Below, piece by piece: positions 12,487-30,679 of a DNA stretch of 64,000 nucleotides. Both the position numbers and the translations under genes were made by a program. How positions within the stretch are numbered: position 1 is the stretch's first letter; every line of letters begins with the position of its first letter. The notes under the pieces were generated by a model that saw nothing but the letters and a program-made list of their open reading frames with translations, was not told the DNA's origin and did no database searches. The DNA lies in the sequence record OR493421.1; one strand, given 5' to 3'.

Positions 12487-13155
12487 TTATTGATTATACG
12501 CGACAGCTGTTATCAAACGATCCAACTTGTTCTGATTGATAACCACGGCATACTTCGCGCTTTCTCTCTTTACCAACCGATCCATACTCCTCCTAAACTG
12601 CGCCACGGTCAATACCCGTCCTTTGTCAGTATAGAGTCGCATGTTACCTTTATGAAGTGTGATATAACGGCTTATAGGGGCGTTGGGTTTACCTTTGATT
12701 ATTTTAGCTGCGCCACCTAAACCTACCAGATGAGAAATGAACACATCCCCATCTGTGATTTTTTTATTCGTGACTTTCTCTAAGTAACGTTTGTTATCTG
12801 CTAATGCTGCGGTAGCAACTAGGATATTTGCTCTATCGTTTTTGATAGAAGCGTTAGGAGATAACCCAAGTCTTTCGTGGTGTTTCTTGAGGTTAGAGTT
12901 ATAAGTCCGCTTGGTGGTTTGCATCACACCTTTGACTTTAGAATACCGATTAACTTTATTGCGCCCCAGGCCACTTTCAATGGAACCTATTGCGGTAACT
13001 AATTCAGGGGAGATCCCCGTAAGTTTGGACGCTTCGAAAATGTAAGTTTTCTGTTTATTAAAATAGTGGTAATCCGACTGAGATGTACTCACTGATGCGA
13101 ATGCGCTACTTATCCCCATGATAAGAATGAACATTAAACCAAATGCGGTCTTCAT
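12487..13155 (-). CDS. secreted SLT-family lytic transglycosylase
   Basis: Signal peptide MKTAFGLMFILIMGISSAFA; SLT motifs AIGSIES (catalytic Glu), GVMQ, NILVATAAL, SHLVGLGG; GAGG RBS. Confidence 0.8.
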   Translation of the reverse strand: MKTAFGLMFILIMGISSAFASVSTSQSDYHYFNKQKTYIFEASKLTGISPELVTAIGSIESGLGRNKVNRYSKVKGVMQTTKRTYNSNLKKHHERLGLSPNASIKNDRANILVATAALADNKRYLEKVTNKKITDGDVFISHLVGLGGAAKIIKGKPNAPISRYITLHKGNMRLYTDKGRVLTVAQFRRSMDRLVKRESAKYAVVINQNKLDRLITAVAYNQ

Positions 13156-13534: not shown

Positions 13535-16009
13535 TTACCTTATCGTTGTACTGAGATTGACGTTAGGGGGAACCGTTAAACCTTCTGTATTTAAAGCAAT
13601 AATGTTAGCGTTGTCCATAAGTCCGTATTGTGAAGAGTAATGACTGATCATAAAACATTGATCGATCTTACCCGTCGCCATCAGTCGTTTGACATAATCA
13701 AAGAAGCGACCACGGTGGTATTCGTCCATGTTAACACCAACCTCGTCCAAGAAAAGAGGACTGTCGTATTTCACGTACCGAGAGACAACTAACCGAAATG
13801 CGAAGTTAATAATCTCCTTTTCTCCCCCGCTACATTTAGCTACGTCAGAAGCTGTTCTGCTAGAGTCGCCATTAATAACTGGGAAGTTATAATCCATTTC
13901 ACCTTTCTTATTAACACACGGTTTAACAAAGAGAGGTGTGCTCCATATGTCCCGTATTACCGCATTCATGTTCGCGCAAATCGCGGTAATAAAGTCCTTC
14001 ATCAATTCCCCGATGTATCCTTTCTTAGGGCAGAGTCCGTCCATCAAGATCTTAAGATCAGATTGTCTTTTCTTAAGGTTCGCGATGTTATCTTCGATAG
14101 ACTCGACCAGAGTCTTTAACGACTCCTGTCTGATCATCAGAGACATGACTTCATCTTTCTGAGGGAGAAGACTTGACATTACTTCGTTGAGTCTTCTGTG
14201 TAAACTGACTTTACCCTCATCCCGTAACAAATCAAGGATTCTTGCCTGACCTTCTCTGACCGCATCAATCGTTATTTCGTAAGCGTCATAATCCTTTAAG
14301 GTCTTCTGGTGTTCCCTCAACAATGCCATACAACGACGAATTGCACGATTACTATCACCCAGCCTTTCTTCGCTGAGTGAGTACGCGGCCAGAGCCTCTT
14401 CCATATTATTCGTTTTAAACACGTTTATACGGGTTTTTAAGACGTTTATTTCTTCGGTCAAGGCATCCTGTTGTTTCTTATAATCCAGCGTCGTAGCGAG
14501 CGTTTTAATGACGTTTATGAGCCTATCGGCTGGTTCATAACCTACCTTATACTCGCTTAACAGATGAAGCAAGAATTTCGCTTCATGACTGCTTTCTACG
14601 TACTGTTCCAAAGCCCTCATTTGACTGAACCATTCTTGATCCAAAGCGAGGGTTTGTTTGTATTGCTTATACTTACTCGTTAGATGAGCGATGGTCGATT
14701 TTAATCCATCTTCCTGTTTAATCAATTTAGATTCGTAGGTCTTATCGAACCCAGGTTTAAACTGAGAAGAGCATTCAGGACACTGGACTTCCGAAGCATC
14801 ACGATAATGTTTGAGTTGATGTTGGACGTGTTCCAACTCAACCCTGGATTGTTTACCTTCGTTAAAAATCTGTTCAGACTTATCTAACCAGTTTTGGTAC
14901 TGACTCGTGGTTAACTCTGGATTAGAACAAAGGGGGATTAAGTTTATCCGATCTATCAAGGTTCTAAAACCAGGAGCGAGGTTAATCAGCCGTTCCCGGT
15001 GTTCAGATATAAACGGTTCTCGTTTGATGAGTTCTTCCGAGTCGTTCAATACCGTTTCTAGTACGGCATGACGATACTCGAGATCCAACAGTTGCGTTTC
15101 AAATTGTTTAGGGTCGTGGTCTTTCAACTCCAGTCCGCTCATCGCAGAGGAAATATCATTCAGTTGCGTCTGATACATCTTCTGCTGGGTTTCGTGATAA
15201 ACCAACGAGGCTTTTAAACTCTCGATGCTCGCCATTAATTGTTGACGTGACAGTGTCCCTGTGGTCATTCCCATCACGAGCAGAGATTTTACTTTGCTAT
15301 TGAAATCCTCAATTTCTAAACGAAGATCCCCGCTAACGTTAGCAGTTCCGTTGAGTTCTCCTTGCAGGTAAACAATTTCGTTAATGCGTTTATCGAGCTG
15401 AGAAATATCGTGGAGGAGTTCTTCTTTGGTTTTTCCTCCTAAAGCACTTACTCGTTGCTGTTCCTCAATCAATCTCTGACTTTGGTTCTTTAACGCCCCT
15501 ACGGTATCGCTATACGCTGATTTGATTTTGTTATAGACAATCAGCGCGTATTTGGTATCGTTAGGGTAGAGGTCCATTAAGAGGAACTTTCTTTCAGCCA
15601 CCCCTAATGCTGTGAAACGATAGTTTTCATTGATTGCGGTAAGAACTTTAAAGTACAACGGAGTAAGGTCAAAATACTGTTTAACCAGTTCTTTTTGTAC
15701 CGCTTGGGTGCCGCCTGAGTTAAGTTCGTTACCTTCTGAATCTTTAAACGAGTGTTTGCTTTTTGATCCCGTGAAAGATTCCAAATAATACCGTTTTCCC
15801 TTATTAATTATTTCGACGTATTTATAGCCGTCTTCTACATAGTCGGCGTTTTCAGGAGGCATCGGTGAAGCTTCGTTGAGTATGGAACTCTTCCCATGCC
15901 CATTGCGTCCAATCAGGATATTCATTAAGCCCAATTGATCCGTTTCAAAATATTCTACTCCTTTGGTGTTCAAAGGAATGTAACCTTTTAATATCAGCTT
16001 AACGATCAT
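13535..16009 (-). CDS. SbcC/Rad50-like SMC-family ATPase
   Basis: Walker A GRNGHGKS, long coiled coils, zinc hook CPEC, signature CSGGE, Walker B LFLDE, H-loop ISH; start moved from 16099 to the ATG at 16009 (MIVKLILKG). Confidence 0.85.
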   Translation of the reverse strand: MIVKLILKGYIPLNTKGVEYFETDQLGLMNILIGRNGHGKSSILNEASPMPPENADYVEDGYKYVEIINKGKRYYLESFTGSKSKHSFKDSEGNELNSGGTQAVQKELVKQYFDLTPLYFKVLTAINENYRFTALGVAERKFLLMDLYPNDTKYALIVYNKIKSAYSDTVGALKNQSQRLIEEQQRVSALGGKTKEELLHDISQLDKRINEIVYLQGELNGTANVSGDLRLEIEDFNSKVKSLLVMGMTTGTLSRQQLMASIESLKASLVYHETQQKMYQTQLNDISSAMSGLELKDHDPKQFETQLLDLEYRHAVLETVLNDSEELIKREPFISEHRERLINLAPGFRTLIDRINLIPLCSNPELTTSQYQNWLDKSEQIFNEGKQSRVELEHVQHQLKHYRDASEVQCPECSSQFKPGFDKTYESKLIKQEDGLKSTIAHLTSKYKQYKQTLALDQEWFSQMRALEQYVESSHEAKFLLHLLSEYKVGYEPADRLINVIKTLATTLDYKKQQDALTEEINVLKTRINVFKTNNMEEALAAYSLSEERLGDSNRAIRRCMALLREHQKTLKDYDAYEITIDAVREGQARILDLLRDEGKVSLHRRLNEVMSSLLPQKDEVMSLMIRQESLKTLVESIEDNIANLKKRQSDLKILMDGLCPKKGYIGELMKDFITAICANMNAVIRDIWSTPLFVKPCVNKKGEMDYNFPVINGDSSRTASDVAKCSGGEKEIINFAFRLVVSRYVKYDSPLFLDEVGVNMDEYHRGRFFDYVKRLMATGKIDQCFMISHYSSQYGLMDNANIIALNTEGLTVPPNVNLSTTIR

Positions 16010-16059
16010 ATAGTAACCATTTTTTAAATGACAAAGTCTTATAAATAAAGGGACAGGGT

Positions 16060-17046
16060 ATGAATTTACTGAATTGTTTAGGTGTCGGAACGGTAACATC
16101 GACTAAACAAACTGACTCAAAAGAAATTACCGTTTCCCTTCCATCGTATAACATGATGGCTGATGGTAGGGAAGTAGCCACAGCCCAAACCTCTGTTCAA
16201 ACTTCACAAACAGCCGACGGAACTAACAAAACTTCTCAGGTTTTGGGATCTAACTCAGTGACGGCTAAGTGGATGGGTGACGGCGGTAACCGAATGACGG
16301 CTCCGGATGTCAGAGAAGGGACACCAGTTGCCATATATCGGTATGGGGATTCAGATCAATTACTCTGGACACTCCATGGGGTCGATACGAAGACTAAGCG
16401 ACTGGAGACAGTGGTTTGGGGATTTTCCGCCAATCCTAATTTAGACGAGAATGCTGAATTCTCTCTGGATAACTATTACACGTTTGAGATCTCCACTCAT
16501 ACGGGTAAGGTTGGGTTTATGACATCCCAAGCTAATGGAGAGAAGACCAAATATCAATTCCAAGTAGATGCTCAAGCAGGGACCGTTCTCCTTGGGGATG
16601 GTGAAGGTAACATTATCGCTACTGATTCGATGTCGCACACCACGAGCGTACGAAATCAGGATGGGTCAGAAATTACACTGGCTAAGATGAACATCTTAAT
16701 TAAGTGCGCGGACACATTTGGAATTAGTGCCGATAAACTATTAAGCATAATCTGCAAACAAATGCTGGTTAGTGCGCAAGACGTCAACGTCGTCGCCCCA
16801 GAAGGCGTAAACATAAAGGCTAACACGTCGGTCATCGGTAACTTGGGCGTGGCGGGTAACATCACCACAATTGCGGGTGAAGGTGGCGATGGAACCATGC
16901 AGTGTTCAGGAACCATTAACGCAGAAGAATCTATAAATGCCAAAGGTGATGTTACAGCAGGGGGTGGCGCAGTATCCCTATTGAAACATCGTCATAGCAA
17001 TTCAGGTGGCAGCGGTACGGGCGGCATGCCGGTTGGCGGCGGTTAA
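16060..17046 (+). CDS. baseplate central spike (gpV/gp5-like)
   Basis: OB-like N-terminus (APDVREG..V), beta-repeat body, Gly-rich tip with HxH metal motif (LLKHRH) as in P2 gpV. Confidence 0.7.
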   Translation: MNLLNCLGVGTVTSTKQTDSKEITVSLPSYNMMADGREVATAQTSVQTSQTADGTNKTSQVLGSNSVTAKWMGDGGNRMTAPDVREGTPVAIYRYGDSDQLLWTLHGVDTKTKRLETVVWGFSANPNLDENAEFSLDNYYTFEISTHTGKVGFMTSQANGEKTKYQFQVDAQAGTVLLGDGEGNIIATDSMSHTTSVRNQDGSEITLAKMNILIKCADTFGISADKLLSIICKQMLVSAQDVNVVAPEGVNIKANTSVIGNLGVAGNITTIAGEGGDGTMQCSGTINAEESINAKGDVTAGGGAVSLLKHRHSNSGGSGTGGMPVGGG

Positions 17047-17053
17047 CAATAAA

Positions 17054-17089
17054 TATAGCGGAGAGGGGCTCACGCCCCTCTCCGCTATA
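17054..17089. terminator. 16-bp hairpin between convergent genes (bidirectional terminator)
   Basis: TATAGCGGAGAGGGGC-TCAC-GCCCCTCTCCGCTATA. Confidence 0.7.
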
Positions 17090-17093
17090 AACG

Positions 17094-17426
17094 TTATTCC
17101 GAATCAGGTAAGATCTGGTTAACGATATAATCCGTCAATACAAATCGAGACATACCGATTTCCGGCATCAATTGGTTAACAATGATGTCGTTGGAATCTC
17201 TGTAGTCTTCGACGTACTCAGGTTGAATTTCGTTGATGCACTCATCGATATTTTCCTCCAATGTTCCAATATCCTCTGGGAGAATCTGGTTCATCATGAG
17301 GTCCATGGCTTGATCTTCGAGATTATCCCAAGAAGGAATGATGTCGTTGATCTCCTCATCAAGATCAGGCATGTACTCCATCCCGCCAAACTCTGGCATG
17401 GTAGAGTTCATGATTACATCAAGATC
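17094..17426 (-). repeat. six tandem 19-aa acidic repeats, consensus D-x-x-h-N-x-h-x-P-[ED]
   Basis: In the last 110 aa, Asn at 7/27/46/65/84/103, Pro at 11/31/50/69/88/107, Asp at 3/23/42/61/80/99. Confidence 0.85.
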
Positions 17427-20309
17427 AGGATCCCCAAAGGTTGTTTTAAAGAAGAGTGTTTCGCCAAGATCCATAGGGTAACCCGTAGTATACGGGATAG
17501 AACTACCCTGACGAGTGTAGGATACCGCGAACCCATCAATGACAGTGTACGTGTCGTTGATAACGAGATTCCCTGCTTCATCCATTACTGCGTAAATGAT
17601 TTCATCAACGGCAGGTTCTGATTTTACGGTTCTGGCCTCAGCCATTACGTTATCGGCCGCCGCTGTGAGATAAATATACGACGTCACTCCTACCTGAGCG
17701 TAGACGACTAAACCGGAGATCATTTGGAATTCTCGACCATCCAAGAACACTTTGGTCCCGGCAGGGATTCTGATTAGGTGATAATCCGAACCACCCATAG
17801 TGACTACGTCATCCGTTAAATCACCGTACTGGTTAAGATAACGATTGAGGTTGGCGTTGAAAAACTCCTCCTCGTTATCCGTCATCCTGAAAATACCGTA
17901 GTAAGGAACGCTGATAGGGCAACAGCCGCGTTTCCCGACGATGGGGAAATTCCCTACACTGACTCTTGGATTTTCTATTTTATCCAGTGTCAGCGTTGTT
18001 CCGGAATATAAGAATGACGCCATCCCGTACTTCGTTTTAAACGCGTTATTAAATGCGATCTCTAACGAATTATCGGAACGAGTTAATACCATTATGTCGT
18101 TGTACGCTGGCGGGGTCAGATATTCGGCCGCACTAAAATCAGGAACAGCAGCCATCCCAAAAGTCATGGATGTCAGCGTACCCAATGACGCTCTGTTGAT
18201 GGTAAACGTTCTTGTTCCGCTATTAGGCGTCGTAGGAACGATTTGACACCCCACATAACCGCAACCATCTGATAATAACACAACACATCTTGTTACTGCG
18301 GTAATGTCGTCAGAGGTCGTCAAAATCCCAACAGACCAGCTCATTGACTGTTTAGTTGCGTCGTACGCCACGCCGGCAGAAGTGTACGCTGTGTGACTTC
18401 TGGTGGAGAACGTCGACAAGATAGATTCCATTGTGGTAATGGAGTCGGCGTCCAACGCCCAAGTTTCCGACGCTTTAACCTCATTCTCCGTAATGACCAG
18501 TTTACCCGTACCGGCAGTATAATCGCTGCGTAAGAAACTCAGCCCCCTCACAGTAACACTGCCATCAGCACCGGAGTTAACAATCAGCCTGGTCGGTATG
18601 GTAGAGCTTAATGTAAAGTTGGTTAAAGAGCTCGCCTGCTTGAACCGATAATACAGCGGCTTGTTCTTAGACGACTGGAGAATCTGAGGGCTATCCCAAC
18701 TTAATACCCCGTAGTAGTCTTCTGAGGTATTGGCCATCGGATAGGTTAAAACCTTTAACCCCGAAGCAGTACTATTAAACGGTATGAAGCGTTTAATGTT
18801 CACCCCTATCGGAGCCGCAAAACTACCCGGATATTCCTTTGTATACTCCCCAGAAAGAGAAAGGGTTTCGTGATAGTTTTTAGCCAGGTCAACGAGGTTA
18901 GTTAGATTGTGGGTAAACGCCCTTAAGAAGAAGCTTTGGTTGGAAGCCATTGACGTACCGTGCCCACCCTCGCTTAAGAACGGACCTTTTCCGTAAACTG
19001 GGTGTAACGCGTTATCGATTTCTTCTTCGAAAAGGATGTTCCCTGATACAGCAATAGCGCCAGCGGTTATCGTCGCCATACTCACCTGGGATAAAGGAGC
19101 GATCGTGTAGGTCGACCCACTTATCGTCAACCTTAACGCTATTCTGGCGACGATCTTCTTAACAACCCCCTGGAATGTCGTCCTCAGGACGGCATCGGTG
19201 TAAAGAATCGCAGATTTCCCCTTAACTTCCCATTCCATATTCCCATAACCGTGGGTTTGGTCAATGGCCGTGTAGGTCGGGTCAATTGTAACCGCCGTAG
19301 CATCCGTTACAGTAATGAAGTCAGCTAAAGGAATGAGGTTGTTAATGGTTCCTGTTCTGACTGTTCCCTTTGGTCCTGTAGCGTTAAAACTGAACCCAGT
19401 GGCGTTATCCACCAGTAGCGTTGCGACCGACTCATCTGGCTGGGTAATGGTCGTCAGAGTGACATTTAATCCAGCCTGAGTTAAGCGTAGCCCGCCTATT
19501 AAAGAAGACGTGTCGAGTAAAGGATCGAATAAGGTCGACAGATAGTCACCTGTTACAGACCCCGAAAAATTAAGAGCGAACTCCCCACCGGTGCCGTTGT
19601 GAGTGTAATCGAAAAAGGTAAGCTGTTTCGAACCATCACTCAGGGTTTGGTATCCCGTCTTAGCGTTCCAGCCGTATGCCAGTTTAGGTACAATCGTACC
19701 GCCACTAGGTGTGAAGTACATCAAATCCCTTGATGTTAAAAGATCACTCAGGTAATTAACCCCGCCGCCGTTCTTACTTAACAAGCTGACGTAATAAGCG
19801 CCGTCAGTGATGTACAAGTTACCTTTCTTATTACTCTGAGTCCATGGGCTGAAAGAGATTGAGTTAATACTCAGATCTCCAGTCAGTCTTTTGAAATAGG
19901 CAATAGGAAGAACCGTCTGTGGAATAAACCCGGTGTAATCAGGTTCAACCAAAAACTGAGCCGCGTATTTTACTCCAGCAGGAGTACAGAACAGGTCGTC
20001 GGTACCGTCAACATGTTCTTCTAACGTAGCTGTCCGTAAATTGTCAACAAGACCCAGACCTATCGTTTCCTTGGTCTCACCATGGATAGGGCCTTTTGTC
20101 GCAATGTGGGCGTCAAGAGCATCGTTTACCGCTGAGCTGACCGATGTCATCTTAGCATTCGCTTCGGCAACTTTATCGGTCAACACCGCCACACTGGCGA
20201 CGTGTTGTAACTCCCTTTTAATCCCGTAGTCGGTTAACGCGTAAAGTAAAAGACCGAAGCGCTCATCCTCTTGACCATTAGGAGGAATGGTTTCATCTAA
20301 AATGATCAT
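17094..20309 (-). CDS. tail fibre-like virion protein, paralog 1 (1071 aa)
   Basis: HIATKGPIHGETKETIGLGLVDN fibre motif; C-terminal ...GSSIP...G domain shared with the two neighbours; extra acidic repeat tail. Confidence 0.7.
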   Translation of the reverse strand: MIILDETIPPNGQEDERFGLLLYALTDYGIKRELQHVASVAVLTDKVAEANAKMTSVSSAVNDALDAHIATKGPIHGETKETIGLGLVDNLRTATLEEHVDGTDDLFCTPAGVKYAAQFLVEPDYTGFIPQTVLPIAYFKRLTGDLSINSISFSPWTQSNKKGNLYITDGAYYVSLLSKNGGGVNYLSDLLTSRDLMYFTPSGGTIVPKLAYGWNAKTGYQTLSDGSKQLTFFDYTHNGTGGEFALNFSGSVTGDYLSTLFDPLLDTSSLIGGLRLTQAGLNVTLTTITQPDESVATLLVDNATGFSFNATGPKGTVRTGTINNLIPLADFITVTDATAVTIDPTYTAIDQTHGYGNMEWEVKGKSAILYTDAVLRTTFQGVVKKIVARIALRLTISGSTYTIAPLSQVSMATITAGAIAVSGNILFEEEIDNALHPVYGKGPFLSEGGHGTSMASNQSFFLRAFTHNLTNLVDLAKNYHETLSLSGEYTKEYPGSFAAPIGVNIKRFIPFNSTASGLKVLTYPMANTSEDYYGVLSWDSPQILQSSKNKPLYYRFKQASSLTNFTLSSTIPTRLIVNSGADGSVTVRGLSFLRSDYTAGTGKLVITENEVKASETWALDADSITTMESILSTFSTRSHTAYTSAGVAYDATKQSMSWSVGILTTSDDITAVTRCVVLLSDGCGYVGCQIVPTTPNSGTRTFTINRASLGTLTSMTFGMAAVPDFSAAEYLTPPAYNDIMVLTRSDNSLEIAFNNAFKTKYGMASFLYSGTTLTLDKIENPRVSVGNFPIVGKRGCCPISVPYYGIFRMTDNEEEFFNANLNRYLNQYGDLTDDVVTMGGSDYHLIRIPAGTKVFLDGREFQMISGLVVYAQVGVTSYIYLTAAADNVMAEARTVKSEPAVDEIIYAVMDEAGNLVINDTYTVIDGFAVSYTRQGSSIPYTTGYPMDLGETLFFKTTFGDPDLDVIMNSTMPEFGGMEYMPDLDEEINDIIPSWDNLEDQAMDLMMNQILPEDIGTLEENIDECINEIQPEYVEDYRDSNDIIVNQLMPEIGMSRFVLTDYIVNQILPDSE

Positions 20310-20354: not shown

Positions 20355-23300
20355 TTAATTATCTTGGCTGCGTTTCCATACTACAGTTGCTTCTTGACCC
20401 AGCGACCCGTCCACAACAGGAATTGCTTGACCGCGACGAACGTTAGAGAGTACCAAATCCCCCACCATCATAGGTTGGAGAAGATCGATGCTGCTGATCC
20501 CTTTATCGTTAGTCGTTATCGTTGCAACAAACAACATTTTGCTAGAAACGTAAAGCTTTTTGGTAGTAACGAAATATTCCGCTTTGGTTCCGTTCAACCT
20601 GATATAAACGTAGAACGTCTTATCAACGGGATTACTTGCAATGTCGTAAAGCGATATACTGCCCGTCGGCATGAGATAACTCCCGCCTTCTATCGTTACG
20701 TTAATCGCATTGGTAAAATACACATACCAGTTATCCGCCGGATAAGTGTGAGCGGTCACATATCGCGTTCCATTTACTGTTGCGATCGATCCAGTATTCG
20801 CCATCTCAGTTAGCACATCAATGCCGTAAACAGTGACCCTCCCTACCTTAGGAATCATGGTAACGTAATATTCGTCGTTATACCACGTAGGTCTTGTTGT
20901 GTTTTCGGTAACGGTAATCGCGTTATTGGATGTCGCCCGCTGTAGCTGTATACGAGACTGTACGATATAAGAAACCGCGTACGCCCCAGTACTTCCTGCC
21001 GGATAGAAACAAACGCCCGGATAAATGTTGTAATAATGGATCCCGGTGGTTCGATTGACATAGACTTCCACTATGGGATAAGTGTCGAATCCTCTAGAAT
21101 AGCTCATGTCAATGTTCGCGAAGAACCTCGGACCATCGTTAACCACTTCACCGGAGTTGTACAGAACGGAATAAGCGGTCACAGTTTTTACGGTACCTGA
21201 CGTTGTTACCGTAGGTTTAAACAAAATAAACCTTGTCCACAGTCCAGCAGATCCCGGCTTCGTATAGAAAAGGGTGGCTACCGAATAGACGTCCGCAAAC
21301 GGGGAATAGGTGAAATCGTAAAGTGTAAACGACGAATATTTCGTCGCCCCGATACCATTAGTCAGCACCGCTTTAATCTGGTTGATAATGGTGGTTGGGT
21401 AATTTACTGTAGAATTCACCTGGGCTGTCGCGACCCCAGGAACACTTGTATCCCAGGTGATGTTCCCGGGTAAAGCAACCTGATTACTTGGCTGAGTGGG
21501 CCAGTTGGTGAATTTATCGAAAACACCCCTATCCTCATAAACGCTGAATCCAGTCCACCCTATCGTTGTCCCTGCTGCGGTTAATGCTGAGGCATCGCCA
21601 GTGACGCTACATCTCGCATAGTTTCCACCACCCGCTATCTTAAAGTCCTGGTTGCTGGGCAGACGTATCATGAGATTAGTGTTGTCCCATCTCATCTCAG
21701 GGTGATTGGCGTAGTCCCCCAATCCGGTTCTGAGGTATAAACCCATTTTGGTCGCGATGTTGGTGGAGCTGGATGGAAGGGGACCATAAACCCCATATAT
21801 TTCAGCGCCATCGAAATAGCTTGATTGAACCGCGCCAGGGGGCTCTACCATCGGATAAGACTTTTTAACTACCGTCAGAGCATTAGTCCCACCCGTCGCC
21901 CCAGAATAAGGGTCTTTGAACCAACTGAGTAAATCAGTTTTTAATTTAAAGGTGGTGTAAGTCTGATTTATTTGTGACTTAAGAATATAGCCATTCATCG
22001 CGTAGATACTAGGTCTTTGGTTCCTACCTATGTTGACCCAGTCATCCCCATTGCCCATTCTCCCCTCTACTCTCTGGGGATTATTGGAGGTATTCCCCAA
22101 ATCAATTAGGTAGTTTCTTCCGCTATCAGGATGGAGTAAAAACGTGTTATTATCAGGATCAAAGATATAAATGAACTGCAGAGCCGGAGAATAGAAGCTA
22201 TAAACAGAACCATTATAATAATAGTCATGCATTCTAGTTTCTAAATAGATCAGTTTCTTGTTAGACGTTGTGTCGTAATCTGTCGGGATAATGACTGATT
22301 TTATCCACTGGAATGAAGACGTCAGATCCAATGAAGTTCTACACCAACTATTATTATAATACCCGGTGGACTTCTTAACGGGATCGGCCATTCTAAGCGG
22401 TTTAACGTTAGAGAATAATGTCCCGAAAACGTTATGTGCGCTTGTCAGAGTTACCGCCTGAAATACCAACGGACCGTCAGTATCAAAGGCTGATAAAGGG
22501 ATGCGATAAAAATAAAGATCCTTAGCCATCCTCAACTCATTGCTAAAATACTGATGGTTGAGATACATCAGCCAAACATAGTTCCCTGCAACAAAAACCT
22601 TGCTGATATCAAACCAAGGGAATCTTTCGTTAACGACATAATTGTCCCACATCCCAGGAGGGGTGGTATCGAAAGAGATTTTGTGAAGATTGTGTTTCGC
22701 TGGGTCAAAGGTCCCTTTGGTCAGAGTAATGTACCAATCCTGAGAAACACGGTTCCCTACGATCATCACGTCTTTACCAGAGCCTTCAACAATGGCGTTC
22801 AGTTTACGGTAATCCAAATTCCCCCATTGGTAGGGATAACCGGTATACCTGACTTTTGGATTAGTACTATCCCAATTTTCAATAGTGGTGTAAAACAGAC
22901 CGTTGTGCTTTCCGTCAGACGCATTGGCGAGCATCATTAACGTTCCGTTATCTTCCAAACAGAATCCGGCCGTTTCACAGTTAGTCCACATCCCTTTAAA
23001 GTCTCCCTCTATCGGAGGGGGGATATAAAAATCAGTTCCGTAATAAGAAAGGGGAAGACGACCAATGTGATGATAACCGTCCGTACTTTGTAATGAATTA
23101 TTAAGTATAGACTGCGCTCCTAGGGGGGTAGAGAACTTATCAGCCGAGCCCAGGAGTTCGTCATTGGCGGTTGCTGTAGCAAAGTTGTCTACGTTACCGA
23201 GTAAAACGTCGGCCGCATCAACATCATGAGGGTTATCAAGATCACGATCGTGATTCATCACGTTATCGCGGAGCTGCTTGGCAGTGAGATCAGTAGCGGT

Positions 23301-23867
23301 CCAAACTGCATCGCTCAGACCTTTTAACTCTTGGTATTTGCTGAGGATGTGATTTTTTCTGTACTGATAAATTTCTTCTATTTCATTGGCCAGATCAGTC
23401 CACGCCGCTATTTCAGTTTCGACGTTATGAATATGAGGCTTAAAAGGGTAAGAATCAGGTTTACCTAAAACTTGTGTATTCCAATCGATAGGGAGGCTGT
23501 TGCCTTCTGACCCAGTTGGGGTGTTCTTAACCATATCTCTCGGAAAGTGGTTAATCCCGCAAGAGTGATACTGAATGCTTAGTGGAGACTTAGCATAGAG
23601 TTCTGTATTGACGATTCTGATGTAAGCCTTTACATCCTTACCGGAAGTTTTTACCAGTGGGATCACCAACCCTTCCAGAACATAATCCGTCCCTTCATTC
23701 CTCACTTGACCGTCTTTATCAGTGATAATCACAGTGCTAGAATAAAATGGAGTATAATCCGGTTTAATGTAATCGAGGGTGGCGTCATCCAATACCACCT
23801 GCTCGGTTAACAGATTATCTGCGTTATCCCCTCTGGGATCGAAAGATAGGATTTTAAAGTCAGACAT
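20355..23867 (-). CDS. tail fibre-like virion protein, paralog 2 (1170 aa)
   Basis: phiKZ-type N-domain (FDPRGDN...P..TPFY...GTDY), H..D.DNPHDV..ADVLLGNVDN, YIPP.I.G.F.G; Thr/Ser/Tyr-rich body; shared C-domain. Confidence 0.75.
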   Translation of the reverse strand: MSDFKILSFDPRGDNADNLLTEQVVLDDATLDYIKPDYTPFYSSTVIITDKDGQVRNEGTDYVLEGLVIPLVKTSGKDVKAYIRIVNTELYAKSPLSIQYHSCGINHFPRDMVKNTPTGSEGNSLPIDWNTQVLGKPDSYPFKPHIHNVETEIAAWTDLANEIEEIYQYRKNHILSKYQELKGLSDAVWTATDLTAKQLRDNVMNHDRDLDNPHDVDAADVLLGNVDNFATATANDELLGSADKFSTPLGAQSILNNSLQSTDGYHHIGRLPLSYYGTDFYIPPPIEGDFKGMWTNCETAGFCLEDNGTLMMLANASDGKHNGLFYTTIENWDSTNPKVRYTGYPYQWGNLDYRKLNAIVEGSGKDVMIVGNRVSQDWYITLTKGTFDPAKHNLHKISFDTTPPGMWDNYVVNERFPWFDISKVFVAGNYVWLMYLNHQYFSNELRMAKDLYFYRIPLSAFDTDGPLVFQAVTLTSAHNVFGTLFSNVKPLRMADPVKKSTGYYNNSWCRTSLDLTSSFQWIKSVIIPTDYDTTSNKKLIYLETRMHDYYYNGSVYSFYSPALQFIYIFDPDNNTFLLHPDSGRNYLIDLGNTSNNPQRVEGRMGNGDDWVNIGRNQRPSIYAMNGYILKSQINQTYTTFKLKTDLLSWFKDPYSGATGGTNALTVVKKSYPMVEPPGAVQSSYFDGAEIYGVYGPLPSSSTNIATKMGLYLRTGLGDYANHPEMRWDNTNLMIRLPSNQDFKIAGGGNYARCSVTGDASALTAAGTTIGWTGFSVYEDRGVFDKFTNWPTQPSNQVALPGNITWDTSVPGVATAQVNSTVNYPTTIINQIKAVLTNGIGATKYSSFTLYDFTYSPFADVYSVATLFYTKPGSAGLWTRFILFKPTVTTSGTVKTVTAYSVLYNSGEVVNDGPRFFANIDMSYSRGFDTYPIVEVYVNRTTGIHYYNIYPGVCFYPAGSTGAYAVSYIVQSRIQLQRATSNNAITVTENTTRPTWYNDEYYVTMIPKVGRVTVYGIDVLTEMANTGSIATVNGTRYVTAHTYPADNWYVYFTNAINVTIEGGSYLMPTGSISLYDIASNPVDKTFYVYIRLNGTKAEYFVTTKKLYVSSKMLFVATITTNDKGISSIDLLQPMMVGDLVLSNVRRGQAIPVVDGSLGQEATVVWKRSQDN

Positions 23868-23914: not shown

Positions 23915-26900
23915 TTAATCAACCAAGGTAGACGACAGCCACGGTGTCTCGCCCAATTCGTTGATCCCCCCGGCCGACCCAGGTATGATCGAACCGATAG
24001 CTTGAGACGATACTCGATAGCCGGTCATTGAAAAGACCTTTTGTGTATCTACAGAAACAATGCTGAAGGCATCAGTAGTGACGGTCGCTATCAACATACA
24101 CGTCGAGGTTTCCGACAACATAGTTGATGACAACTCATATACCGGGTTACCTTCAGTGAGTTTTAAAAACAAATAGAACGTTTTATTTTGAACACTCGTG
24201 AAATAATCGGTAAGTGTTAACGTCCCCACCGGAAGTTCAAAATAAGTGCCTTTCAAGATAATTTTAGACGCCGAGAAGAATAACGTCCATTGGTTAACAG
24301 GTATAATGTCAGCGACGACATACAACGACCCCAAGAGGTTGGGGTTAGCGTACCCGTTAAGAACAGACTGATACGTCGTCCCGGCTAAACGACCCGGGGT
24401 TATCCCGCCGCCTAAGAACGTATCCAGCGACTCACCAGGTGGAATGAGTAACAATCCCACGCCCTTCAATGCATGAACTACAGGTGCGTCTATCCCACGG
24501 CCACCGGGGTAATTATTAATAGCGCCAATTACTTTAGGCGCCGTTAGGCGTAAAGACAGGTATGCGGTTTTGGCCACCCCATAACTTGTTGGGTTATCGG
24601 CATTTTTACTATTAGCCGATCCCCAGTAAAGAGATACCTCACCCGCACTATTACGATAAACCGTACAGTACCCGGTGTTAACGTAATGGTTACCGGTAGT
24701 ATCAAACCAAGAACGATCTCCAGTATATTGGCCGTTGGTTACCGTGTACTTGTTAGCGGTGGTCAGATCGCCCACGTTCATCACACAAGTTTTAACACCA
24801 TTAACGGTGGTTGTTTGGTTAGATGCTAGCGTGGGGTCTTTTACCACGTTAAGTGTAACCACGCCAATGTATGCGTTGGTGTCAGATCCCGATCCCATCC
24901 ACTCTATGATAAACATAGGTGCAATGATCGATTCTTTACCAGGGAACCACAACAACGTCCAAGCGTGCTGATAGTAGTCCGCTGCAATAGAAGGGAAGTT
25001 TGTTGTGATTAAACTTTTCACTAGCGCGTCAGATATCTTCACGTAAAGGCTGGGGTTGAAATTCAGAGTTCTCGAGGCAGTATTCCTAACTGTATTGTAA
25101 CTGTGTGTCAGCAAATTATCTTGAAGACCAGTTCCCAGTGTATAGATTGTACCGCCAGCAACAGAAAAGAACGTTTCCCCTTTATTTGTGGTAACTCCTT
25201 CATCGACGAAAGATATTCTTACTCCGCGGGGCGGAATATTGGTATTAAAAATATCGCTCGTGTAAGGCATATGGTAATAGGTGTTATCGTCGTATACCGT
25301 GGCCGACGTCCTATCCCCAGTCCTCAACTTAGCCGTATGGATAAAGACCTCATCGTAAACCGTGGATTTAATAAGTTCATAATGGGTCGTGGTCCCTCCA
25401 GCTTCTAGGTAGGGGACCGTACTATGACAGCTCGATTCTGGCGCTGATCCATAGACCGTTGTATCAGCAATGGAGTTCCCCAGGGTGTTCAGGTTATATT
25501 GAGCCGCTCGAGGAACATCATAGCTTGTTACCGCAGGGTGACCAGTGCAGAACAGAGTCGGGTCCGATAACGTAAAGAAATCGGACATCCCCATCCCTAC
25601 CGATAACGGGAAGAAAGTCCAGTGAGTCGATCCACAAGCAAACCGTCCATTGTTAGAAAGGACAGAACATCCACTCTTGAACCCACCTGCCATTGCCCAC
25701 TGTAAATGCCAAGAAACAACGTCGTTAACGAACGCAGTATTCGCGGCATTTTGATTACCTAACCAAGGCGCATAATTGGTGTCCCAAGTATTGATATCAA
25801 AACTCCGTGTACTGTTTCCTCGCATCCAAGTGGCGGTGACGATCCCACCGCTCTCCTGAAATCTCCAAACCGGGGAATACGTTAGCGCGACCTGCTTAAC
25901 TCCCAATTTGTGGAATACTGGGAACCACCAACGCATATAAGAGACCGTCGGGTTGGATGGGTCAGGGATCATCTCGATTTGGATGTCTCGCTCCATAACC
26001 ACACTGTCTAATGGGGTGGAAAACCCTCCCAGCATTCGGGTAACCTTATTGCTGGCATTCAGAGTAACAGCGAGTGGATCGAACTGACCGGTAGTAGATG
26101 TTTTGCTGGCGTTTGACGAGTCGGTATAAATAAGAGAGACGTCCGTTATTGAAACAGAGGTCGTGTTAATATCGAAATTGGTAACGTCGATTCTCTTTAT
26201 CGCTACTGAGCGCTGGCCGGTGGACTGTAACTCGCTTACTTTAAACAGATAAATGTAGTTCCCACAAACACACATTCTAACATGATCAATTCCAGTTAAG
26301 AAGGTTTGCGTCGCTATTGGAACGAGAGTGTGGTTTGTTGGATTGTAAGTTCCGTTGCACTTAACGACGTACCAGTTATTAGTCTTGTCGTTCCCCACAA
26401 TCATCCAGCGATAATCTCCGCCTTTGATGACCGAAGTCAGTGAGACGCCAGCTTCTTTCGCTACAGAGGGAGCGTACTCGTAACGACTGTGGATCCAATC
26501 GTCGGGCGAAGGAGTGGTATTATAGGGAGTTTTGTTGTACATGTACATTAACAAATCGGTGTTAATGTCTTTATAGTTACCTATCGCCACCAGATAACCG
26601 TTACGCTCTAAACAGGCGACTCGCCAAGGCTGTCGTGTCCCTATCCCTTTAAACGACCCACCTATAACCGGAGGGATGTAAAAGTTTTCACCGTAGCGTG
26701 CAATTGGGAGAACGCCGGGTTGGACCAAGTTACTGAGATCCACAGTGGTGTTTTCAGCTAACTTTTTCAGATACCCTGGGGTTATACGATGTTTATCATC
26801 GATAGGATCTCCCCAATTATCGGAAGTATAAGTCCCGATGTTATCAACGTTACCCAATCCCACTTTAACATTATCGATCCCGTGCACGTTGATCTTGTTA

Positions 26901-27532
26901 CTGGCGTGTTCGTTAATGAGTGCGATGCAACGACTCTGTACTTGTGAAAGGTAACTAATGGCGTTGTTGATACGCTGAACAAAGAATTCTTCGTACGGGG
27001 CGTGATAACCTTCCCCGCCTACGGTGTTAGCGACCATCTGCTCGAAAGCATCTGCGAGGTCTTTAAATGCGTATACTCCGTACCTGACGTCATGACCATG
27101 CTGCTCTGGATCAAACAATATAGGCTTGTTGGCGATATCGTCGAACCAAACAGCTCGCTCATCGTCTATGACGGTATTATAAAGATCCAGGAAACTCTTA
27201 TCAAAGAGAGATACCGAACCTACTGTTTGATAGCGGGCGTTAAACCGAGTTATGGTTTTATCCAAAATGCGAATAAAACAACCGACCGCTTTACCGGTTC
27301 TTCTGGAAAGCTCACCCATGATGTTGAAGAATTCATAATGTGTTCCGTAAACCATTGGGGTGCCGTCAGGGAAGCTCAAAATCACGCTGTCGATAAAGAA
27401 GGGGGCGTGACGTGGGACGACGATCATTTTTCGATCATTATCTTCCCTTTGAAGATGCTCGAAAGGAATCAAGTTTTCTGGGTTCTTCCCCGTGATATCC
27501 AAACGGTATTCGGGAATATTAGGATAGTTCAT
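23915..27532 (-). CDS. tail fibre-like virion protein, paralog 3 (~1205 aa)
   Basis: YRLDITGKNPEN...VPRHAPFF N-domain, NVHG...VGLGNVDN, YIPPVIGGSFKG; shared C-domain; ATG at 27532 preferred over GTG at 27541. Confidence 0.75.
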   Translation of the reverse strand: MNYPNIPEYRLDITGKNPENLIPFEHLQREDNDRKMIVVPRHAPFFIDSVILSFPDGTPMVYGTHYEFFNIMGELSRRTGKAVGCFIRILDKTITRFNARYQTVGSVSLFDKSFLDLYNTVIDDERAVWFDDIANKPILFDPEQHGHDVRYGVYAFKDLADAFEQMVANTVGGEGYHAPYEEFFVQRINNAISYLSQVQSRCIALINEHASNKINVHGIDNVKVGLGNVDNIGTYTSDNWGDPIDDKHRITPGYLKKLAENTTVDLSNLVQPGVLPIARYGENFYIPPVIGGSFKGIGTRQPWRVACLERNGYLVAIGNYKDINTDLLMYMYNKTPYNTTPSPDDWIHSRYEYAPSVAKEAGVSLTSVIKGGDYRWMIVGNDKTNNWYVVKCNGTYNPTNHTLVPIATQTFLTGIDHVRMCVCGNYIYLFKVSELQSTGQRSVAIKRIDVTNFDINTTSVSITDVSLIYTDSSNASKTSTTGQFDPLAVTLNASNKVTRMLGGFSTPLDSVVMERDIQIEMIPDPSNPTVSYMRWWFPVFHKLGVKQVALTYSPVWRFQESGGIVTATWMRGNSTRSFDINTWDTNYAPWLGNQNAANTAFVNDVVSWHLQWAMAGGFKSGCSVLSNNGRFACGSTHWTFFPLSVGMGMSDFFTLSDPTLFCTGHPAVTSYDVPRAAQYNLNTLGNSIADTTVYGSAPESSCHSTVPYLEAGGTTTHYELIKSTVYDEVFIHTAKLRTGDRTSATVYDDNTYYHMPYTSDIFNTNIPPRGVRISFVDEGVTTNKGETFFSVAGGTIYTLGTGLQDNLLTHSYNTVRNTASRTLNFNPSLYVKISDALVKSLITTNFPSIAADYYQHAWTLLWFPGKESIIAPMFIIEWMGSGSDTNAYIGVVTLNVVKDPTLASNQTTTVNGVKTCVMNVGDLTTANKYTVTNGQYTGDRSWFDTTGNHYVNTGYCTVYRNSAGEVSLYWGSANSKNADNPTSYGVAKTAYLSLRLTAPKVIGAINNYPGGRGIDAPVVHALKGVGLLLIPPGESLDTFLGGGITPGRLAGTTYQSVLNGYANPNLLGSLYVVADIIPVNQWTLFFSASKIILKGTYFELPVGTLTLTDYFTSVQNKTFYLFLKLTEGNPVYELSSTMLSETSTCMLIATVTTDAFSIVSVDTQKVFSMTGYRVSSQAIGSIIPGSAGGINELGETPWLSSTLVD

Positions 27533-27643: not shown

Positions 27644-27898
27644 TTAGTTGGCATTACTGATTACATCCGTGACGATCCCGTTAAAAACAAAACTGAAATC
27701 GTCAGAAACCGTCAGAGCATCGCCACTAACGAAGGTGTAACTGTTAACAACTTCATTATCTTTAGAAAGAGTTAATTCGATGTCAGGTTTCTCGTACGCC
27801 ATTCTTTCTTTAATGGCTTGGAGAACCTCATCTTCTAAGCTCTTATCTTTGAGCGCGGCGAGATTGACGGTGGCTGAAAGTACTGCTGTAACAGGCAT
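27644..27898 (-). CDS. small hypothetical protein within the fibre cluster (84 aa)
   Basis: AAGG RBS; lies between the tailspike and fibre 3 genes. Confidence 0.6.
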   Translation of the reverse strand: MPVTAVLSATVNLAALKDKSLEDEVLQAIKERMAYEKPDIELTLSKDNEVVNSYTFVSGDALTVSDDFSFVFNGIVTDVISNAN

Positions 27899-27907
27899 AT
27901 TTTTTCC

Positions 27908-30679
27908 TTAGGTGTTCCAGGCGACCAGACTGACGTGATCTGCGTAAGTCGTTGTTCCCGCTGCGTCCTGAGTTAAGAAACTAAATCCACCGACAGTCAC
28001 CGCTGAGGACAATTGAACCGTCCTACGTGCGCCGTTGTGATAGGCTTCTAGCACCCATTGGAACCCAGTTGAGTTCATGTTACTTGAAAAAGCAACAGTG
28101 TAGTTGCCTGCGGCGTTTCTGGTTAACGTACATCCGATATTGGAATACGTGCTCAATGTTCCCGCAGAATCTTCCTTAAACTTAAGGCTGACCGCCGGGG
28201 TTTTAAGGTAATACGCAGTAGGGAGGCGAGTAGATGGAACCAGACCGTAGAACATCAGATCCAGACCAAACGTACATCCGGTGTTGCCAGTGGAGTAGTT
28301 CAAACCATAATAAGATACTGTGGTTGTACCGTAGAGATTACCTTCCGGCATGTTCACGTTGGTACAGTTCACCATCCTACATCCGCCACCTGCCGAGGTA
28401 GAGAACAATCCGGCGCCGCAGTTATAAGAATACGGTTTGATAACGGAATAGCTCACAGTATCGAGATAGATACCGTACCCGGCCGATTGATCGGAATCCA
28501 GTCTCAGATCACAGTTGTTGGAGTTGTACACGATAACGCCGTGGTAAGTGGAAACGTTGGCTTTCGCTTTTACATTACCTCTCACTCTTGAGCAGTTCTC
28601 AATATACGCACCATGAACCTGAGTTGATTCGACGTTAATATCGTTGAGGTAAACGTTATTAACACCACCCACCCATACACCGTAGCTGTTATTGGCTTTC
28701 CCACTCACTCCCGTTATTGAGACATCGTTAATGACAGAAGTAGAACCGTATTTCTTAACTCGAACGATGTTGCGACAGTTAGCTCCATCTTTTACATGGA
28801 TCTCGGAGAATTTTAAACGAGAACAAGGTTGCGAATAATAATTCAGTGAAGCGTCCTGTTCTTCGTTATAAATGAGGAGGCTAGCGATAACCGAGCTTCC
28901 TTTAAGTCCTCTCACTGTGATGTTGGCGCAGCCGGACAGTTTAGATGTGATCCCAATGCAATCGTCACCAGACTCGATATCCAGATTCGTTAATGTTGCG
29001 TCGACACAGTCCATCAGGTGACCGCCGTCTCGACCGCCAGCTAACGATGTAGTCGTCGCACTGTTGGCATAGACGAAAGAACGTTGATAGTAATTGTCAA
29101 TGATGATCTGTTTACACGATTCTAGTGAAAAACTCCAATCCGGATTGTTTACGATCCTGACGTTCCTAAACCGAATATTGGTGCACCCGGTCATCTGAAC
29201 AGGCCGAGTGTAGTTTTTAGACGTCAGTGTTTCGTTAACCCCACCATCGATAGTTATCCCACTTAGCTCGATGTCGGAAACACTTGTCGCCGAAATAACC
29301 TTTATCAGCGCTGTACCCGTGGCGTCAGCTGCAGGAGGAGAGCTTATAGTTGCACCGTTTGAGTATATCCCACCCCCAGCGGACAGAGCTAACGTTGAAG
29401 TAACGATATACACAGAATCGGATCTCGGGAACCAAACTTTAGGGTTGACTGCTTTAGCCCGGTTATAAGCCAAGGCCCAGTTACCATTATCACTACTTTG
29501 ATAATAGTCTCTTACACTAATCGTATCCCGGAGTCGGTCATTCACAGTACGGGCTATTGCCCCAGCTACTGCCGTGTAACCTACGATATCCCCGCCCTGG
29601 CCGATGGTTTTCGAAGAGAGTCTGGTTTCAAGCTCAACTGCGCCAGCCACTTTCCAACCGGCTATCAGATTACCTGAAGCATCGTAAGGGGAAGCCCCTC
29701 CGCTGACAACGTAACCGCCGGTAGGATAAGTCCCACCCCAATAGTACCAACTGTTAGTTGCGGTATGGAATAACATATCCTTGGTTGACTTCAGTGTCGC
29801 ACCATTATCGAAGGTTTCCAAGCCGTTGATGGTGTTCGACAGCTTATTATCAACTTGCCCAGCGAGCGTAGCCGTTTGCTGCAAGTAAGAGTTCATTTGA
29901 TCGTAGATTTCTTGAACCGTTTCTTCGAAGTCAGCGGGTAACGATCCGTTCAAGAACTCGGCTAACATTTTATCGATGAGTTTCTTCGTAATACCAAGAA
30001 CCATATATAACTGGTTGGAATTACCGTCGAAATCACTTTCTTGAGCCACCGGGTAATCGTGAAGATTGCTTAATCCCACATCCTCTGGCTCGCCGTTGGG
30101 ATGTGCGATTCTTAAGTTATCGGCACTGTGCTGTGTCAGCTGTGTCTGGACGGTTGGGTTATTCGTTTCATTGTTCATCGCCTCAATCATCAGAGTGAGG
30201 TTAGCCATGAACTCGTTGTAGTTATAAGTCTGACTTTCTGGATGGTCGTGGGGATCGGCTGGGAAACCAGAAGGGAGATTAACGACCTGACTCCAATCTG
30301 CCAATCTCCCGGATGAGATGATATTGGCCACAGCTTCAGCGTACGCAACGTCATCTAAAACGAACGGCCCGCCGATGGTGTCATAACTTATTGAAATGTT
30401 CAAAGCAGTGGTTGCTTTGAGAAGAATTATCCCGCCATAAACGTTTTTGGAATAATTCTTGATAAAATCCATAAACGGATAACTGAAGACGTAGTCTTCA
30501 CCTAATACCAACGGGGCATTAGTATCCGAATTGACAATAGTTAAGTTTTCGGAAAAGAAAGGAGCGGCTCTAGGAACGACCAGCACACGGGTTCCCCCGG
30601 GTACACTCGCGAGCTCTCCAGTGATACGGGCGTCATCATCATCTTGGAAGGGATTCCAAGGATATAAATATTCTGACAT
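27908..30679 (-). CDS. tailspike / polysaccharide depolymerase with phiKZ-type fibre N-domain and GH28-like beta-helix
   Basis: VVPRAAPFF N-domain; tailspike linker (FDNGATL...WYYWGG...P...W; RTVNDRLRDTISVRDY); beta-helix with RDG, GDDC, RVK; ATG at 30679 has an AGGA RBS (ORF track starts at GTG 30715). Confidence 0.75.
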   Translation of the reverse strand: MSEYLYPWNPFQDDDDARITGELASVPGGTRVLVVPRAAPFFSENLTIVNSDTNAPLVLGEDYVFSYPFMDFIKNYSKNVYGGIILLKATTALNISISYDTIGGPFVLDDVAYAEAVANIISSGRLADWSQVVNLPSGFPADPHDHPESQTYNYNEFMANLTLMIEAMNNETNNPTVQTQLTQHSADNLRIAHPNGEPEDVGLSNLHDYPVAQESDFDGNSNQLYMVLGITKKLIDKMLAEFLNGSLPADFEETVQEIYDQMNSYLQQTATLAGQVDNKLSNTINGLETFDNGATLKSTKDMLFHTATNSWYYWGGTYPTGGYVVSGGASPYDASGNLIAGWKVAGAVELETRLSSKTIGQGGDIVGYTAVAGAIARTVNDRLRDTISVRDYYQSSDNGNWALAYNRAKAVNPKVWFPRSDSVYIVTSTLALSAGGGIYSNGATISSPPAADATGTALIKVISATSVSDIELSGITIDGGVNETLTSKNYTRPVQMTGCTNIRFRNVRIVNNPDWSFSLESCKQIIIDNYYQRSFVYANSATTTSLAGGRDGGHLMDCVDATLTNLDIESGDDCIGITSKLSGCANITVRGLKGSSVIASLLIYNEEQDASLNYYSQPCSRLKFSEIHVKDGANCRNIVRVKKYGSTSVINDVSITGVSGKANNSYGVWVGGVNNVYLNDINVESTQVHGAYIENCSRVRGNVKAKANVSTYHGVIVYNSNNCDLRLDSDQSAGYGIYLDTVSYSVIKPYSYNCGAGLFSTSAGGGCRMVNCTNVNMPEGNLYGTTTVSYYGLNYSTGNTGCTFGLDLMFYGLVPSTRLPTAYYLKTPAVSLKFKEDSAGTLSTYSNIGCTLTRNAAGNYTVAFSSNMNSTGFQWVLEAYHNGARRTVQLSSAVTVGGFSFLTQDAAGTTTYADHVSLVAWNT

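Follow-up and report, generated by a model that had tools for sequence, protein, structure and literature searches.

An acidic six-unit tail on an anchor-less receptor-binding protein of Klebsiella phage YC1 and its relatives

Nucleus-forming jumbo phages carry clusters of large receptor-binding proteins (RBPs), and the outer architecture of these clusters is still missing from the virion structures of phiKZ and Goslar. In phiKZ, the gp131 family, with PhiPA3 gp150 and 201phi2-1 gp216 as gp131 homologs, forms the hetero-hexameric base of the fibres (PMC13250141). The DUF7941 proteins of the Goslar 'fibre cloud' are peripheral host-recognition proteins, predicted to link up by docking of a flexible segment in one chain to a domain in the following chain (PMC13742148). 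More generally, fibre and baseplate proteins of chimalliviruses assemble via flexible segments and helix bundles (PMC13250141, PMC13742148). Here, we describe a compact, sequence-defined, and clade-specific module on one of these large RBPs: an acidic tail at its C-terminus.

The window (i.e. the whole stretch of DNA that was analysed, 64,000 nucleotides) corresponds to bases 1-64000 of OR493421.1, Klebsiella phage YC1 (100% identity). The window region is 93-97% identical at the DNA level in phages Miami, phiKp_32, KPN8, BUCTxx100, and VB_ZK_P1. Miami is a Miamivirus of the family Chimalliviridae, the nucleus-forming jumbo phages (PMC13709898), and YC1 is likewise a Miamivirus-like, nucleus-forming jumbo phage. 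BUCTxx100 (OR529409.1) was deposited as a Stenotrophomonas maltophilia phage; this region of its genome is 94% identical to the DNA of the Klebsiella phages and its RBPs are near-identical to theirs, and its host label may be questionable. The RBP cassette of YC1 and its immediate surroundings contain the following features:

17094..20309, minus strand: gene of the fourth RBP paralog, 1071 aa, anchor-less (YC1 WNY40910, the counterpart of Miami gp058); stop codon at 17094-17096
19890..20309, minus strand: N-terminal module of this protein, aa 1-140, with a predicted long helix and a conserved motif region
17439..17822, minus strand: beta-rich C-terminal domain, about aa 830-957, with predicted strands; carries the appended tail
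17097..17429, minus strand: acidic C-terminal tail, aa 961-1071, six units of 19-20 aa, net charge -27
17394..17420, minus strand: motif core 1, aa 964-972
17334..17360, minus strand: motif core 2, aa 984-992
17277..17303, minus strand: motif core 3, aa 1003-1011
17220..17246, minus strand: motif core 4, aa 1022-1030
17163..17189, minus strand: motif core 5, aa 1041-1049
17106..17132, minus strand: motif core 6, aa 1060-1068 (missing or degenerate in P0003, a relative described below)
17054..17089, unstranded: GC-rich hairpin between convergent genes, directly after the stop codon, -33.9 kcal/mol, z = -8.7
20355..23867, minus strand: sister paralog, 1170 aa, N-terminal anchor domain, no tail
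23915..27532, minus strand: sister paralog, 1205 aa as annotated (1205/1208), N-terminal anchor domain, no tail
27908..30679, minus strand: tailspike, 923 aa, with the same N-terminal anchor domain followed by Tail_spike_N and a GH28-like body
16060..17046, plus strand: convergent neighbour, homolog of the phiKZ gp164 central spike (PDB 6orj, E = 8e-22)

The cassette starts with a gene that carries the anchor domain, followed by a small ORF, two anchored fibres of ~1200 aa, the anchor-less protein, the convergent gp164 homolog, and an SbcC-like gene. We found the N-terminal anchor domain in the 923-, 1170-, and 1205-aa proteins, and the 1071-aa protein begins where this domain ends; an earlier, sequence-only reading of this DNA was thus correct in stating that the protein lacks the N-terminal anchor domain of its paralogs. 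The anchor domain is widespread in chimalliviruses and matches the PhiPA3 gp150 locus and the 201phi2-1 'tail protein' locus. The body of the 1071-aa protein is covered by PHROG 14667, with a match that ends at aa 921 and leaves the acidic tail outside. The motif region of its N-terminal module (aa 1-140), with no gp131-like anchor domain before the module, is common to many chimallivirus fibre proteins. The beta-rich C-terminal domain is common to all sister paralogs and to the orthologs in Erwinia phage Joad and Pseudomonas phage EL, and a profile of this domain gave only chance-level matches in PDB and Pfam (E of at least 0.13). Given the strong hairpin that follows the stop codon, both the gene and its transcription unit truly end here; the hairpin is probably a bidirectional terminator.

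With regard to annotation, the product of 16060-17046 (+) is listed as 'hypothetical'; it also matches a 36za chain labelled 'tail terminator gp51' (E = 2e-23), a label that looks like a naming inconsistency. The SbcC/Rad50-like ORF 13535-16099 (-) has a possible start 90 nt upstream of its annotated start at 16009, and 34501-35406 (-), annotated as 'hypothetical', has a strong Pfam DUF7208 match (E = 3e-103). A protein identical to the 1071-aa protein, WP_275276369.1, is filed under Klebsiella quasipneumoniae on a contig of 251,651 bp, which clearly represents an entire phage genome within a bacterial assembly.

The 1071-aa protein continues for 111 aa beyond the point where its sister paralogs end. 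Both the 1170-aa and the 1205/1208-aa paralogs stop about 10-15 aa after a shared C-terminal motif, as do (within ~15 aa of the motif) the paralog counterparts in the metagenomic relative, Joad, and EL, and the EL ortholog. Among these paralogs compared, only the 1071-aa protein runs on into an acidic repeat. This repeat consists of six D-x3-N-x3-P motifs that start at aa 964, 984, 1003, 1022, 1041, and 1060 (spacings of 20, 19, 19, 19, and 19 aa) and together span window positions 17106-17420. The extension beyond the paralog end, the six motifs, and their spacings are the same on translation as in the sequence-only reading, which had placed the tail at 17094-17426, corresponding to the stop codon plus aa 962-1071. 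Of the long ORFs in the window, this one is the most acidic, and the tail is its most acidic part: aa 961-1071 contain 29 acidic residues, 0 Lys, and 2 Arg, with 26% Asp+Glu and 33% Ile/Leu/Met/Val.

The repeat is not a product of chance. Translated in six frames, the 64-kb window contains the stricter pattern D-x2-[IVLM]-N-x3-P six times, always in the tail, where ~2.3 occurrences would be expected from composition. When the tail alone was shuffled 20,000 times with its composition kept, two motifs were obtained in 5 shuffles and three or more in 0. The repeat is not a recent DNA duplication either: Tandem Repeats Finder detected no repeat in the tail DNA, and the mean column identity of the six DNA units is 56%. 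Self-BLAST of the protein body also revealed no internal repeats.

The sequence-only reading did not recognise the repeat, and database searches agree with it. The tail alone had no match in PHROGs and NCBIfam, its best match in Pfam-A (Casc1_N, 16 bits) was below the cutoff of 28, and a tail profile gave only chance-level matches in PDB (E of at least 4). No Pfam or NCBIfam match to Peptidase_S74 or another chaperone family was found for the whole protein or the tail, and no known cation-binding motif or family matched the tail. LRR profiles did not match; the tail has a period of 19 aa (LRRs 20-30 aa), and helices, not strands, are predicted on its motifs. A Tail_spike_N (PF18668) or gp10-like domain is absent from the 1071-aa protein, and within the cassette only the 923-aa spike has Tail_spike_N. 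For DUF7941, the 1071-aa protein had no match in a Pfam copy that may not include this model. A known repeat or chaperone domain, whose detection would have spoken against the sequence-only reading, did not emerge from these searches.

When 1.84 billion representative proteins were screened with an HMMER profile of the tail, we recovered only its own cluster and P0003, besides one match that we rejected as spurious (P0004, a eukaryotic cadherin-like protein with a perfect 19-aa tandem repeat, E = 1.8e-4). In addition, tblastn of the tail against 50,697 phage genomes yielded just 7 Miami-like genomes, a pattern scan of IMG/VR for the motif yielded none, and a metagenome scan yielded one identical copy and nothing outside the clade. 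The word-based protein searches returned only three clusters each, which makes a deep alignment impossible and leaves the alignments shallow. Judging from these searches, the tail is restricted to one phage genus and one metagenomic relative. The search for copy-number variation with a repeat profile, as proposed in the sequence-only reading, recovered only this one clade, and all full-length members of the 90% cluster (32/32) are exactly 1071 aa, meaning that copy number does not vary among them.

We also compared the tail with that of P0003, the single diverged relative (1064 aa), which lies on a 30.7-kb Logan contig with the same gene order. The P0003 and YC1 proteins are 46% identical overall and 52-55% in the tail, a value that matches those of the best-conserved modules (the N-terminal module and the C-terminal domain). 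The P0003 tail holds five full motifs at the same spacing and a shortened, degenerate sixth, and Asp, Asn, and Pro are invariant in 11/11 full units across the two lineages. Among the 7 closely related phage genomes, tail protein identity is 98-100% with DNA that is 93-97% identical. Selection at the protein level, as claimed in the sequence-only reading, is therefore supported by both the close relatives and the five motifs kept in P0003, and these comparisons show that the tail is under purifying selection. Since the sixth unit is missing in P0003, 'six' is no fixed requirement, and the DE.IN.I.P subtype noted for copies 2 and 4 is not general, as copy 4 of P0003 differs.

The units differ in how they relate to each other. 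Orthologous units of YC1 and P0003 are 37-79% identical and units within the array 21-37%, and identical positions are equally frequent in linkers (27/49) and motif cores (25/45), in statistics that rest on two diverged lineages and hence on few independent comparisons. Because orthologous units are more alike than units of the same array, the array is old and was never homogenised, with each unit and linker separately constrained. The lack of indels in the tail is not remarkable, since the rest of the YC1-P0003 alignment is nearly gapless (just 4 gap columns outside the tail). Close relatives differ, at synonymous and non-synonymous sites alike, mostly in the central part of the gene, and both ends, including the tail, are most conserved; the neighbouring fibre gene shows the same pattern of a variable middle and conserved ends. 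Low synonymous divergence in the tail is thus a general trait of gene ends. An antisense ORF at 17172-17621 (+), considered as its cause, is not conserved in the relative. This ORF and a second one at 20364-20813 (+), each of 149 aa with a TTG start, lie opposite the C-terminal ends of fibre genes and are probably by-products of codon composition.

Orthologs of the 1071-aa protein occur in other phages, and the comparison separates the tail from the missing anchor. Joad gp101 (also in RisingSun) and EL ORF116 are, like the YC1 protein, encoded by the last fibre gene, convergent with a gp164-like spike and followed by an SbcC-like gene, and they have the same C-terminal beta domain and an anchor-less N-terminus. 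The body of the YC1 protein is homologous to that of the orthologs (23% identity over 88% of its length, E = 6e-28); synteny, a collinear body, and the shared C-terminal domain place it in one orthologous group with EL ORF116, Joad gp101, and PHROG 14667. Joad gp101 and EL ORF116 begin at the same anchor-less point as the YC1 protein, indicating that the missing anchor is ancestral. Unlike the YC1 protein, they have no acidic repeat: EL ORF116 stops right after the shared C-terminal domain without any extension, and Joad gp101 carries an unrelated 155-aa module. The link between the missing anchor and the repeat that was implied in the sequence-only reading therefore fails, and the tail is no substitute for the anchor, as both orthologs are anchor-less yet repeat-free. 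The Joad/RisingSun module (L006 11791-12252), located where YC1 has the acidic repeat, is non-repetitive and had no counterpart in Pfam or PDB. Yet other C-terminal ends occur in the last fibre genes of Vibrio phage phiKT1019 and Shewanella phage FishSpeaker. Together, these differing ends show that the C-terminus of this ortholog group is a site for appended modules.

The first cassette gene differs between these phages as well. It is anchor-only in Joad and EL, where Joad gp98 (245 aa, L006 1072-1809) is 42% identical to aa 1-244 of the YC1 spike, and it has a spike body in YC1 (GH28-like) and on the P0003 contig (L002 90-2456), with first ~400 aa that are 57% identical and distal parts that differ. 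The gain of the spike body and that of the acidic tail co-occur, in that YC1 and the P0003 contig have both and Joad and EL have neither, a co-occurrence that counts as a single evolutionary event. Taken together with the anchor-less last gene, the Joad/EL arrangement looks as though one fibre had been divided into two proteins, one with just the anchor and one without it. The product of the small ORF that separates the spike from the first fibre gene is acidic and 84 aa long in YC1 (27644-27898, -) and coiled-coil-looking and 64 aa long on the P0003 contig (L002 2469-2663); the two are not homologous.

We modelled the protein with AlphaFold2 on shallow alignments and obtained a mean pLDDT of 38 for aa 760-1071 and 33 for the full length, with about 30-45 in the tail; these models are informative for secondary structure only and hold no tertiary information. 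Both independent runs predicted one short helix per motif, starting a few residues before the Asp and ending before the Pro (low-confidence helices at 963-970, 983-990, 997-1009, 1015-1028, 1039-1047, and 1060-1065). A long helix, a candidate counterpart of the helix that enters the phiKZ six-helix bundle, was predicted at aa 14-72 (pLDDT ~40-50). Hydrophobic residues occupy motif positions 3, 4, 7, and 8, with Asp, Asn, and Pro at 1, 5, and 9, and the helical hydrophobic moment reaches 0.5-0.58 in units 2 and 4. Such a pattern is that of a short amphipathic helix, the helices themselves being tentative.

The last 111 residues thus form a polyanionic module that is confined to one lineage, kept by selection, and built of six 19-residue units that are not equivalent. 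In the reading we propose, each of them would form a short amphipathic helix that starts a few residues before the invariant Asp, has the Asn on its polar face, and ends at the Pro. The module would hang on the shared C-terminal beta domain, at the opposite end of the fibre from the N-terminal helix; by analogy with phiKZ, this helix probably attaches the fibre to the baseplate cluster. The hydrophobic faces of the helices and the individually conserved linkers would then pack onto a putative protein partner as one composite contact surface. Candidate partners are the remaining chains of the fibre itself or a different component of the virion, and binding would cap or tether the far end of the fibre. 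A composite protein-protein contact element at the far end of the fibre is the reading we rank first, although it remains tentative: the tail is helical if the low-confidence models are right and distal if the phiKZ analogy extends to this fibre, and its binding role is a proposal.

Several observations bear on this reading. Units and linkers conserved position by position would be expected of one defined structure or interface and not of beads on a string, and a C-terminus that accepts varied add-ons fits an exposed fibre end. The regular repeat, the purifying selection on the tail, the helices on all six motifs in two AlphaFold2 runs, the constant length of 1071 aa, and the way in which other chimallivirus fibre and baseplate proteins assemble likewise favour a contact element. 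Counting against it, the very low pLDDT makes even the helices tentative, and the adjacent fibre proteins have an acidic or neutral character throughout, so that the cassette offers no obvious electrostatic partner. When we looked for a basic partner in the window, the sole strongly basic protein was an SLT-domain transglycosylase with a signal peptide, a lysis-related protein also present in Joad, which we rejected. Its ORF (12487-13155, -) has an N-terminal signal-like hydrophobic segment and a charge of +23, the most basic in the window, and its product probably belongs to lysis and not to the virion.

Second in our ranking, and unlikely in our judgement, is a tail that acts on the host surface and not on phage proteins. 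The tail would be an autonomously folded acidic helical-repeat knob at the distal tip (e.g. a three-chain bundle). It might be bridged by divalent cations to anionic polymers of the envelope, or be steered or repelled electrostatically within the anionic capsule. Exact periodicity and position-specific conservation would fit a folded repeat; other points in favour are a composition rich in Asp, Glu, and aliphatic residues and free of Lys, the globular module of Joad at the same position, and, judging from phiKZ gp131, a C-terminus that probably lies at the distal end (PMC13250141). However, AlphaFold2 shows no compact fold (on a very shallow alignment), the tail matched no known cation-binding motif or family, and among close relatives the middle of the protein varies and the tail does not, whereas an element of host specificity would be expected to vary.

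Six regularly spaced motifs with the same invariant Asp, Asn, and Pro speak for the multivalent hub of the sequence-only reading, in which six independent and equivalent docking sites would bind six copies of a partner, such as the subunits of a hexameric baseplate ring, or gather the tailspike or the other fibres into a branched complex. The phage is indeed listed with a 'branched multi-fiber arrangement' and 6 predicted receptor-binding proteins (PMC13709898), and the tail co-occurs with a spike body gained on an anchor-only first gene, albeit in what amounts to one evolutionary event. Six equivalent sites would predict interchangeable units and free linkers, and we observed the opposite: units resemble their orthologs (37-79%) more than each other (21-37%), linkers are as conserved as cores (27/49 versus 25/45), and P0003 has five units and does without the sixth. 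Moreover, the EL and Joad orthologs are anchor-less but repeat-free, and the candidate cargo proteins have acidic or neutral N-terminal regions. The idea of a new multivalent docking hub, with each acidic helix capturing a partner copy through chemistry unrelated to gp10-like or Tail_spike_N domains, is weakened by these observations and seems to us rather improbable.

On a par with the hub stands an assembly aid, for which we would give similarly poor chances. Here, the tail would be a C-terminal element for folding, trimerisation, or solubility, or a handle for a chaperone, and would be removed from or irrelevant in the finished virion. C-terminal chaperone modules that are cleaved after assembly are common in phage fibres and spikes, and the tail was added to a domain that serves as the complete C-terminus in all sister paralogs. 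The sister paralogs with this same domain and the EL ortholog nevertheless manage without a tail, no Peptidase_S74 or chaperone family was matched, and no conserved partner gene lies nearby, the small ORFs of 84 and 64 aa being non-homologous. Finally, a functionless low-complexity expansion tolerated by chance, which the very narrow distribution (one genus and one metagenomic relative) might suggest, is highly improbable, given that the tail is conserved above the protein average, keeps Asp, Asn, and Pro in 11/11 full units of two lineages, lacks a repeat at the DNA level, and has the same length in all 32 sequences.

Should the tail prove to be a contact element, it would reveal how a fibre without an anchor is arranged in the RBP cluster and would represent a new helical-peptide docking principle for combining phage RBPs. 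If it is a cleaved assembly aid or an inert cap, it would amount to a minor annotation note. Either way, the tail is a clean sequence marker of the Miamivirus lineage.

Several known systems are close to the YC1 cassette or its tail. In the two sister paralogs and the tailspike, an N-terminal domain matches the locus of PhiPA3 gp150, a gp131 homolog, and the 201phi2-1 'tail protein' locus, and the helix behind this domain is a putative counterpart of those in the phiKZ six-helix bundle; a sequence search of the PDB matched no chain. The 1071-aa protein, in contrast, is devoid of the gp131-like N-terminal domain, and no acidic C-terminal repeat has been described for the phiKZ fibres. Goslar provides a precedent for docking by flexible segments in the host-recognition proteins of a chimallivirus (PMC13742148), but the mechanism differs: docking there is beta-strand addition by a single linker, unlike an array of acidic helices, and there is no sequence similarity.

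The branched RBP systems of Klebsiella and Ackermannviridae phages (Tail_spike_N/T4 gp10-like) also join several RBPs, and the YC1 spike has Tail_spike_N. These systems use folded domains and N-terminal peptides, whereas the YC1 repeat is C-terminal, on a protein without those domains. Peptidase_S74 chaperone domains are, like the YC1 tail, C-terminal add-ons of fibres; the tail differs from them in being repetitive and acidic and in having no recognisable protease motif. Outside phages, the exchangeable apolipoproteins, which are punctuated by prolines, and tandem acidic helical docking motifs of disordered regions, such as the LD motifs of paxillin, use short amphipathic helices with Pro or linkers as binding surfaces. 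The analogy with the YC1 tail is limited by a period of 19 aa, and not 11 or 22, by the near-absence of basic residues from the tail (0 Lys, 2 Arg), and by the lack of a detectable sequence relationship. Overall, the tail is an orphan variant of the modular appendages of phage fibres, attached to a known kind of protein at a position that accepts add-ons.
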